The notes under the pieces were generated by a model. The model did not search any database, was not told where the DNA came from, and was given only the letters and a program-made list of their open reading frames with translations. Of a DNA stretch of 64,000 bases, positions 40,847 to 41,338 are shown piece by piece. The stretch covers positions 32,194,628 through 32,258,627 of the forward strand of contig OZ037767.1 of assembly GCA_964035545.1 (NCBI GenBank), written 5' to 3'. Origin of the DNA: Bugula neritina. Taxonomy: Eukaryota; Animalia; Bryozoa. Position numbers and translations under genes: made by a program. Each line of letters starts with the position of its first letter. Within the stretch, counting starts at the first letter, position 1.

Positions 40847-40862
40847 CTGTTCTGTACTCTGT

Positions 40863-40909
40863 TCTGTGCTGATGAGGGGACAAATCCCGAAACAGCTGCT
40901 GTCTACAGA
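40863..40909 (+). ncRNA. Type I hammerhead ribozyme, copy 1
   Basis: Stem I TCTGTG/TACAGA; core CTGATGA (40869-40875); stem II GGGA-CAAA-TCCC; GAAAC (40889-40893); stem III ACAG-CTG-CTGT; cleavage triplet GTC (40901-40903). Confidence 0.9.
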
Positions 40910-41171
40910 TTGAGATATTACGCTCTCATTTGATGCTCAGCAATGACATTAAATGATTGAGCACTCTCACCATGGTCACAAACTCAAGCTGCTAGCATTT
41001 TGCAATGCTCGTGACTCCTAGGTGACCCCTAGAGTCACTTGAGCACTCTGGCTTGAGTTTACACACCTTTTAAATATGCTTTAGTAAAACTATAAGTTTT
41101 ACTATTGCGAAGGCATTGAACTATAATCCAGTTCAGTTCAGTGTGCGAAGGTGTGGGCCATGGTACTCTGT

Positions 41172-41218
41172 TCTGTGCTGATGAGGGGACAAATCCCGAA
41201 ACAGCTGCTGTCCACAGA
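41172..41218 (+). ncRNA. Type I hammerhead ribozyme, copy 2
   Basis: Same as copy 1 with fully Watson-Crick stem I TCTGTG/CACAGA; CTGATGA at 41178-41184; GTC at 41210-41212. Confidence 0.9.
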
Positions 41219-41223
41219 TTGAG

Positions 41224-41338
41224 ATATATATATATATATATATATATATATATATATATATATATATATATATATATATATATATATATATATATATATA
41301 TATATATATATATATATATATATATATATATATATATA
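41224..41338. repeat. (TA)n microsatellite
   Basis: Between the retrozyme-like unit and the Penelope-like element 3' end. Confidence 0.98.

Follow-up and report, generated by a model that had tools for sequence, protein, structure and literature searches.

Two direct repeats within a tract of TA repeats in the bryozoan Bugula neritina, each readable as a hammerhead ribozyme, raise the question of what they enclose: a unit of a mobile retrozyme, the orphaned ends of a Penelope-like element, a piece of a tandem satellite, or a passenger sequence whose ribozyme no longer cleaves. The stretch of DNA analysed (hereafter referred to as the window) is 64,000 nucleotides long and spans positions 32194628–32258627 of its contig. 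The genome searched comprises 216,009,554 bases, and the published assembly has 216.00 Mb in nine chromosomes (PMC11480708). A preliminary description of the window had proposed that the two hammerheads would release a 309-nt, potentially circular RNA, from a possibly undescribed retrozyme family.

Non-LTR retrozymes are tandem units of 170–400 nt bearing type I hammerheads, which give circular RNAs and occur alongside Penelope-like elements (PMC7229834). In metazoans, the units measure 220–245 nt in the coral Acropora millepora and ∼350–390 nt in mussel, and retrozymes are also found in the axolotl (Cervera & de la Pena 2020, NAR). They are related to the terminal repeats of Penelope elements, and have been proposed to derive from these (bioRxiv 10.64898/2026.07.22.740005). 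The evidence assembled below indicates that the interval 40847–41227 is very probably a copy that retrotransposition has placed there, and that it belongs to a retrozyme family which is young and non-coding and was presumably helped in trans by a Hydra-clade Penelope-like element.

Two hammerheads within TA repeats

I read the sequence between positions 40600 and 41500 directly (Table 1). The two direct repeats are 65 nt long, are spaced by 309 nt, and differ at one position only, 40904 (T) in copy 1 and 41213 (C) in copy 2. This difference replaces a G.U by a G-C at pair 1.1–2.1 of stem I, and pairing is kept; repeats, spacing and pairing are all as the preliminary description had them. In both hammerheads stem I is open-ended, with CUC-UGUU-CUGUG pairing to (U/C)ACAG-AUU-GAG, which corresponds to the type I topology. 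The core CUGAUGA is followed by stem II (GGGG/UCCC, with three G-C pairs and one G.U) around the loop ACAAA, and then by GAA. Stem III reads ACAG-CUG-CUGU, after which C17 stands at the predicted cleavage site, the triplet being GUC. The invariant core is complete in both copies (C3, U4, G5, A6, G8, A9, G12, A13, A14, A15.1 and U16.1, with a non-G at 17). The initial assignment as complete type I hammerheads therefore stands for core, stems and GUC triplet, while stem II had been misread as GGGA/UCCC. The cleavage points predicted there, after 40903 and after 41212, agree with the GUC triplets. The (TA)n tracts on both sides were found again, and so was the lack of a coding sequence, as the only ORFs at the element are artefacts that read through TA repeats.

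A 25-nt string from the core occurs twice in the 64,000-nt window and was absent from 100 shuffles of it, and a 35-nt hammerhead pattern occurs 569 times in the genome, compared to 0 for the reversed control. The match is thus not due to chance. Rfam models gave a different picture: across the whole window no hammerhead family (hammerhead clan CL00010; RAGATH-1 hammerhead) reached the gathering score, and the check by Rfam that had been suggested earlier thus came out negative. Relaxed scans of 700 nt and 78 nt were run at E≤10. In the 78-nt scan, the best score was a weak one to the RAGATH-1 hammerhead (16.7 bits, with 56.3 needed), and Hammerhead_3 also scored weakly (12.8 bits, with 48.5 needed). 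The RAGATH-1 alignment places core, stems and GUC where they were read by eye. The misfit lies in the short stem III and stem II, which fit these models poorly, the invariant core being complete. Other weak matches (Pestivirus 3'UTR, mir-297 and Plasmodium RNAs) are artefacts of the TA repeat and were discarded.

At its 5' end the copy is truncated 15 nt upstream of the first CUGAUGA, where it is preceded by a 7-nt filler; with only these 15 nt left, the locus is close to the smallest size that retains two complete ribozymes. The filler, going by its letters, looks like a template-jump or microhomology scar. At copy 2, the element ends with …CACAGATTGAG-ATAT, blending into the downstream (TA)n.

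Table 1. Features of the locus, in positions of the window.
Feature	Positions	Strand	Basis or remark
Upstream (TA)n microsatellite, target site	40749–40846		Sister insertions examined also lie in (TA)n (33/33)
5'-junction filler CTGTTCT, 7 nt	40847–40853	+	Duplicates 40859–40865; family consensus here is GGCCATG
Hammerhead copy 1, type I	40854–40918	+	Predicted cut after 40903; U at 1.1 (40904), C in the family
Unit between predicted cleavage sites, 309 nt, non-coding, strongly self-paired	40904–41212	+	Predicted fold; aligns with 271-nt family units
38-nt hairpin-forming insert	41114–41151	+	7-nt GCGAAGG direct repeats at 41107–41113 and 41145–41151
Hammerhead copy 2	41163–41227	+	Identical to family consensus; predicted cut after 41212
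Downstream (TA)n	41224–41338		Common to retrozyme and neighbouring Penelope-like element
5'-truncated Penelope-like element, Hydra clade by its motifs	41340–42681	−	tblastn and motif reading; (TA)n at both ends

Unit length, junctions and dispersal of the family

A blastn search of the genome with the 374-nt element returned 86 matches, in which the hammerheads are nearly always spaced by 271 nt, and an alignment of 28 distinct units gives a usual unit of 271–272 nt. The unit at the locus corresponds to an ordinary 271-nt unit plus a 38-nt insert, making 309 nt. When an 81-nt probe across the insert was searched against the genome by blastn, it matched its own locus and nothing else. The proposed 309-nt monomer is therefore correct as the spacing at this locus, but as a family trait it has to be replaced by 271–272 nt, the longer form being a one-off. 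The insert is self-complementary, lies between the GCGAAGG direct repeats, and resembles what a template switch or a hairpin could leave behind during reverse transcription.

A second subfamily has a 272-nt unit, a GGGG/CCCC stem II and the tail GAGGUAU, with unchanged architecture. Both subfamilies have an intact invariant core in their consensus, and the sole difference between their ribozymes is a G.U to G-C exchange that maintains pairing.

I then counted the two kinds of junction, allowing up to three mismatches as for the 569 hammerheads. The hammerhead with its tail running into (TA)n was found 477 times, and the hammerhead with its tail running into a next unit 117 times, each with 0 in the reversed control. 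With 117 internal junctions for 477 ends, a second hammerhead is present in at most about one quarter of the insertions. These number ∼480 and are dispersed over all nine large scaffolds. The number of hammerheads, their 271-nt spacing and their dispersal bear out the retrozyme reading of the preliminary description, namely non-coding tandem units with a hammerhead each.

Flanks were read for 33 distinct arrays out of the ∼480, and all 33 lie inside a (TA)n tract; together with the blastn matches and their spacing, this confirms the copies, tandems and TA flanks that had been expected. Throughout these 33 arrays the 3' end is constant: it reads …GUC/CACAGAUUGAG, then AUAU merging into the repeat, after which the RNA continues UACG. 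This fixed end is the distal GAG of stem I (3' strand CACAG-AUU-GAG) followed by AUAU, so that the tail of the element past the cleavage site measures 11–15 nt. Each copy is truncated at its own point on the 5' side, in some cases within the hammerhead. Arrays contain one to four hammerheads, head to tail, and the flanks outside the TA tract differ among copies. The flanks examined showed no LTR-like repeats.

The variable 5' ends, the fixed 3' end and the arrays of one to four hammerheads together argue for target-primed reverse transcription with early termination, and against satellite spread. In the proposed mechanism, retrozyme RNA would be converted to DNA by this route, with a nicked (TA)n target priming on the AUAU just past the hammerhead, which would produce the observed junction. 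Multimeric inserts would arise from multimeric transcripts, or because a circular monomer is copied several times over.

Among the 33 arrays, nine variants private to an array are common to every one of its units, and 41 are specific to a unit, "private" being relative to 33 of ∼480 arrays. Such sharing fits repeated copying of one monomer, as in rolling-circle reverse transcription of a circle, but is suggestive only, and the same pattern could have come from a multimeric transcript of uniform sequence or from homogenisation at a later time. Unequal exchange also yields tandem units with shared private variants, as expected of a tandem satellite that spreads at the DNA level, by segmental duplication or unequal crossing-over, and in which the hammerhead-like string would be incidental. 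I regard this explanation as barely credible: the dispersed sites on nine scaffolds have the same 3' end, varied 5' truncations and differing flanks, the arrays are very short, and the 35-nt ribozyme string is abundant in the genome and absent from its reversed control.

The preliminary description had itself offered the alternative that the repeats are an orphan fragment of a Penelope-like terminal repeat, that is, the pseudo-LTRs of an autonomous element that lost its coding part. The terminal repeats of Penelope-like elements do bear hammerheads, partial tandems of such elements occur, and the genome holds several active-looking families of these, one of which adjoins the locus. However, (TA)n comes after 477 of the 569 hammerheads and the non-coding body of the 271-nt unit after 117; these account for the total, and essentially no hammerhead is left to end an RT-encoding element. 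It had been stated that the retrozyme reading would fall if all other copies were the termini of such elements, and the junction counts show that they are not. In addition, none of the 33 arrays has an ORF between its hammerheads, and when the retrozyme was compared by blastn with the adjacent Penelope-like unit and with four further 3' regions, the only matches were to the TA repeat or to retrozyme copies. An orphan pseudo-LTR is thus a very improbable explanation for this locus. An old origin of the whole family from a Penelope terminal repeat, as the 2026 preprint proposes for vertebrates, is possible.

The family is young, and its insertion junctions can be read directly in young copies. 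Because of this youth, conservation of the hammerhead core says little: in 65 copies tabulated, 3 substitutions fall in the 11 core positions and ∼34 in the 46 others, a borderline difference that was not taken as support.

Several (TA)n tracts host at least two independent retrozyme insertions side by side (sampled loci L012:830–1300, L005 and L023), in either orientation and from different subfamilies, the TA repeats acting as reusable landing pads. A further small element with a hammerhead likewise terminates in (TA)n, at L023:1130–1290 and L006:3100–3336, the latter an inverted pair. It reads CUGACGA-GUGCACA…UGUGUAC-GAAAC-UACUAGU-A, has a tail of ∼55 nt, and could be another retrozyme or the 3' end of a Penelope family sharing the landing pads.

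Fold of the RNA and traces in sequencing libraries

The 309-nt unit is predicted to be strongly self-paired, with a minimum free energy of −115.9 kcal/mol (z = −7.0 relative to shuffles). In the consensus fold, two compensatory pairs separate the subfamilies (U-A to C-G, and U-A to G-U), as does a matched G/C insertion in one hairpin. Each compensatory change is a single event, and these pairs therefore lend modest support to a conserved rod-like fold.

For the ribozyme, the catalytic fold of a 61-nt monomer was computed at −9.3 kcal/mol for copy 1 and −10.9 kcal/mol for copy 2, compared to −15.6 kcal/mol for a competing fold that sequesters the CUG of the core. The stem III hairpin, near-palindromic and consisting of 4 bp with a 3-nt loop, contributes −1.2 kcal/mol by itself. 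Cofolding of two copies yielded −42.1 kcal/mol; here stem III forms between the two molecules, as 5-bp segments on either side of a U.U. In nearest-neighbour terms the monomeric fold is thus disfavoured and a double-hammerhead dimer is favoured, which backs in silico the dimeric cleavage first suggested from the near-palindromic stem III.

Both hammerheads of a single transcript might pair up as a double hammerhead, a dimeric form described for amphibian retrozymes (PMC7229834). The bryozoan family resembles amphibian retrozymes and newt satellite 2 in having a weak, near-palindromic stem III that makes a double hammerhead feasible. Unlike the amphibian ones, the bryozoan stem III is predicted to form 4 bp and a 3-nt loop still, and some monomer activity may be possible. 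Read-through transcription of a genomic copy with two hammerheads, such as this one, could free an RNA one unit long, whose ends would be 5'-OH and 2',3'-cyclic phosphate. Since stem III is so short and near-palindromic, cleavage would most likely proceed through a double hammerhead formed from two ribozyme copies, and the released RNA could be circularised by the host tRNA ligase, as for the coral, mussel and axolotl retrozymes.

Sequencing libraries were also considered. The stretch, or part of it, is contained in 18 runs from six studies, in all cases as assembled contigs; one of the 18 is recorded as RNA, and the labels of the runs include symbiont, biofilm and marine metagenomes. Four runs, each from a separate study, were compared with the locus. 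All four contain contigs of the 271-nt form, and all four have C at 40904; in runs X2 and X3 a contig skips the 38 nt, going from 41105 to 41144. Depth across 41120–41132, within the insert, is zero in all four, so that these runs give no sign of RNA from the locus itself. The run recorded as RNA, X12, is an oligo-dT metatranscriptome and contributes a 220-nt contig that runs from 41046–41113 through TGTGGGCCATG consensus bases to 40854–40994. This contig crosses from the unit end through the hammerhead into the unit start, a form that also exists as tandem DNA. In assembled contigs of this kind circles are inseparable from tandem DNA or multimeric transcripts, ends and strand are not readable, and the libraries may contain DNA. 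Expression of the retrozyme family is plausible, and the copy at the locus, aberrant through its private 38-nt insert, is probably silent.

Run X1, a 2016 "symbiont metagenome" labelled RNA-Seq, has 306 heterogeneous family contigs on 40847–41224, with a summed word depth of up to ∼55,000. This could reflect extreme RNA abundance, or deep DNA coverage multiplied by the copy number of a multicopy family. I rejected read depth as a measure of expression, as X1 may be DNA, and contig letters are not read letters.

These observations bear on a further explanation, in which the element is a SINE-like passenger, mobilised only through a linear, (UA)n-tailed read-through transcript, its hammerhead being vestigial and non-cleaving and no circular RNA being made. 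Priming on a (TA)n target would come naturally to such a transcript, a competing fold is predicted to win over the monomeric ribozyme, and at least about three quarters of the insertions have a single hammerhead and are unable to release a unit. The contigs, for their part, reveal no RNA ends or circles, and conservation, in so young a family, is no proof of function. However, both subfamily consensuses retain an intact core, their single ribozyme difference preserves pairing, and the dimer fold is strongly favoured by the model. Moreover, the element stops on its 3' side precisely where a complete hammerhead ends, and related animal retrozymes do cleave and circularise. I therefore consider a SINE-like passenger unlikely, although less so than the orphan pseudo-LTR discussed above.

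The Penelope-like neighbour and known retrozymes

Downstream of the locus, at 41575–42681 on the minus strand, lies an ORF encoding the C-terminal 369 amino acids of an RT-EN protein, which tblastn aligned at 98.9% identity to amino acids 349–717 of a full-length copy. A total of 126 matches to this ORF occur across the genome, many of them 95–99% identical, with open frames of up to 717–740 amino acids, and further Penelope-like families with intact frames of ∼715 amino acids are found at 45–50% identity. A tandem copy of the neighbour family has a unit of 2451 nt, with a 717-amino acid ORF and a hammerhead-like motif in its 3'UTR.

A Pfam search with the 368-amino acid fragment and with the 717-amino acid full-length protein gave no match, neither to RVT nor to GIY-YIG. 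I therefore read the motifs directly. The protein possesses VRWK, ADKT (DKT replacing DKG), YRDDG, and the linker CxCX5C as CNCKQPSHC; its endonuclease has VIY…YIG, lacks the internal CCHH cysteines, and shows CNLC (CxxC) and CRH (CxH) near the C-terminus. The diagnostics of the Hydra clade are a length below 3 kb, a single ORF, RWK, DKT, YRDDG, a CxCX5C linker, a GIY-YIG without CCHH, CxxC and CxH towards the C-terminus, a hammerhead and a (TA)n target (Craig et al., 2021). Judged by its motifs, the neighbour belongs to this clade, with the canonical hammerhead present only in part. The clade has been reported from Cnidaria, Mollusca, Echinodermata, Arthropoda and a hemichordate, and a host among the bryozoans would be new.

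The hammerhead-like motif of the neighbour family lies at ∼41476–41520 (minus strand), and also on the minus strand of sampled locus L045, at 7125 and 4674. It reads CUGAUGA-U-CGUAG…CUACG-U-GAAAC-AAUAUUGU-A, with a U.U replacing the usual G10.1-C11.1, a perfectly palindromic stem III and a stem I of only ∼3 bp; as a ribozyme it may be weak, active only as a dimer, or dead. Other Penelope-like copies in the sampled loci have canonical type I hammerheads 60–130 nt from their 3' ends.

Penelope-like coding sequence is found within 1.5 kb of 8 of the 33 sampled retrozyme arrays, which by a rough estimate is ∼10 times the value for random placement. In the proposed mechanism, the reverse transcriptase would be supplied in trans by one of the (TA)n-specific Hydra-clade Penelope-like elements; a fragment of such an element lies 113 bp downstream of the retrozyme in the same TA tract. 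Although the retrozyme has no sequence similarity to the neighbouring Penelope family or to the four other 3' regions compared, the shared target, the architecture and the proximity suggest that the helper is one of the Hydra-clade Penelope-like elements of this genome. Mobilisation of retrozymes by Penelope elements is widely assumed, with prior support coming from co-occurrence and from similarity to terminal repeats; the shared obligate (TA)n target and 3'-end architecture provide independent evidence for a link to the Hydra clade.

A more specific version, in which a Hydra-clade Penelope-like reverse transcriptase, primed by a TA nick, copies a circular monomer by rolling circle, can be proposed tentatively on the basis of the fixed 3' end and the shared variants, and I hold it to be possible but doubtful. 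If true, the retrozyme would be assigned to its helper clade by target site and not by sequence similarity, and retrozyme and helper would form an experimentally tractable pair, with unusually clean genomic evidence of movement.

Several systems can be compared with this family. Like metazoan non-LTR retrozymes, it consists of short, non-coding tandem units with one type I hammerhead each, without LTR, PBS or PPT; it is multicopy and dispersed, has a low GC content, a highly self-paired predicted RNA and indel size variants, and coexists with autonomous, hammerhead-bearing Penelope-like elements in the same genome. It differs from them in its arrays of one to four hammerheads, compared to up to 62-mers in coral, and in that it inserts strictly into (TA)n, its constant 3' terminus lying where the hammerhead ends. 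Its copies number in the hundreds, compared to roughly 100,000 in the axolotl. Metazoan retrozymes are made as circular RNAs, whereas the bryozoan family is known here from DNA and assembled contigs.

The pseudo-LTRs of Hydra-clade Penelope elements (Craig et al., 2021) likewise have a type I hammerhead near the 3' end, insert into (TA)n, and form partial tandems with 5' truncation. In contrast to these, the retrozyme has no ORF and a unit of 271 nt compared to ∼2.45 kb, and its post-cleavage tail of 11–15 nt is shorter than the roughly 60–125 nt of the Penelope-like copies in this genome. The LTR retrozymes of plants (Cervera et al., 2016, Genome Biol) are also non-autonomous, and by analogy the bryozoan RNA may, like theirs, be cut by hammerheads and circularised. 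However, theirs are type III hammerheads inside LTRs, accompanied by PBS/PPT and 4-bp target duplications, in elements of 600–1000 nt that are mobilised by Gypsy LTR elements.

A literature search on bryozoans turned up no account of hammerheads, retrozymes or Penelope-like elements. Neither a retrozyme with an obligate (TA)n target and a fixed ribozyme 3' end, nor one tied to the Hydra clade by its target site, is described in Cervera & de la Pena (2020) or in the 2026 preprint. Animal retrozymes being already known, what appears to be new at the sequence level is the host phylum, the obligate (TA)n target and the target-site tie to the Hydra clade. The suggestion of an undescribed family consequently applies to the species or phylum, but not to the kind of element. 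Both retrozymes and the Hydra clade would thereby be extended to a bryozoan host. The value of the locus itself is modest, since it is one slightly aberrant copy among ∼480, and the interest lies in the junctions of the family and in the target-site link.

Just past the Penelope-like fragment, at 42760–43020, a short tandem array with a unit of ∼20 nt (…TGTTGAATACAACTGTTGA…) was also observed.
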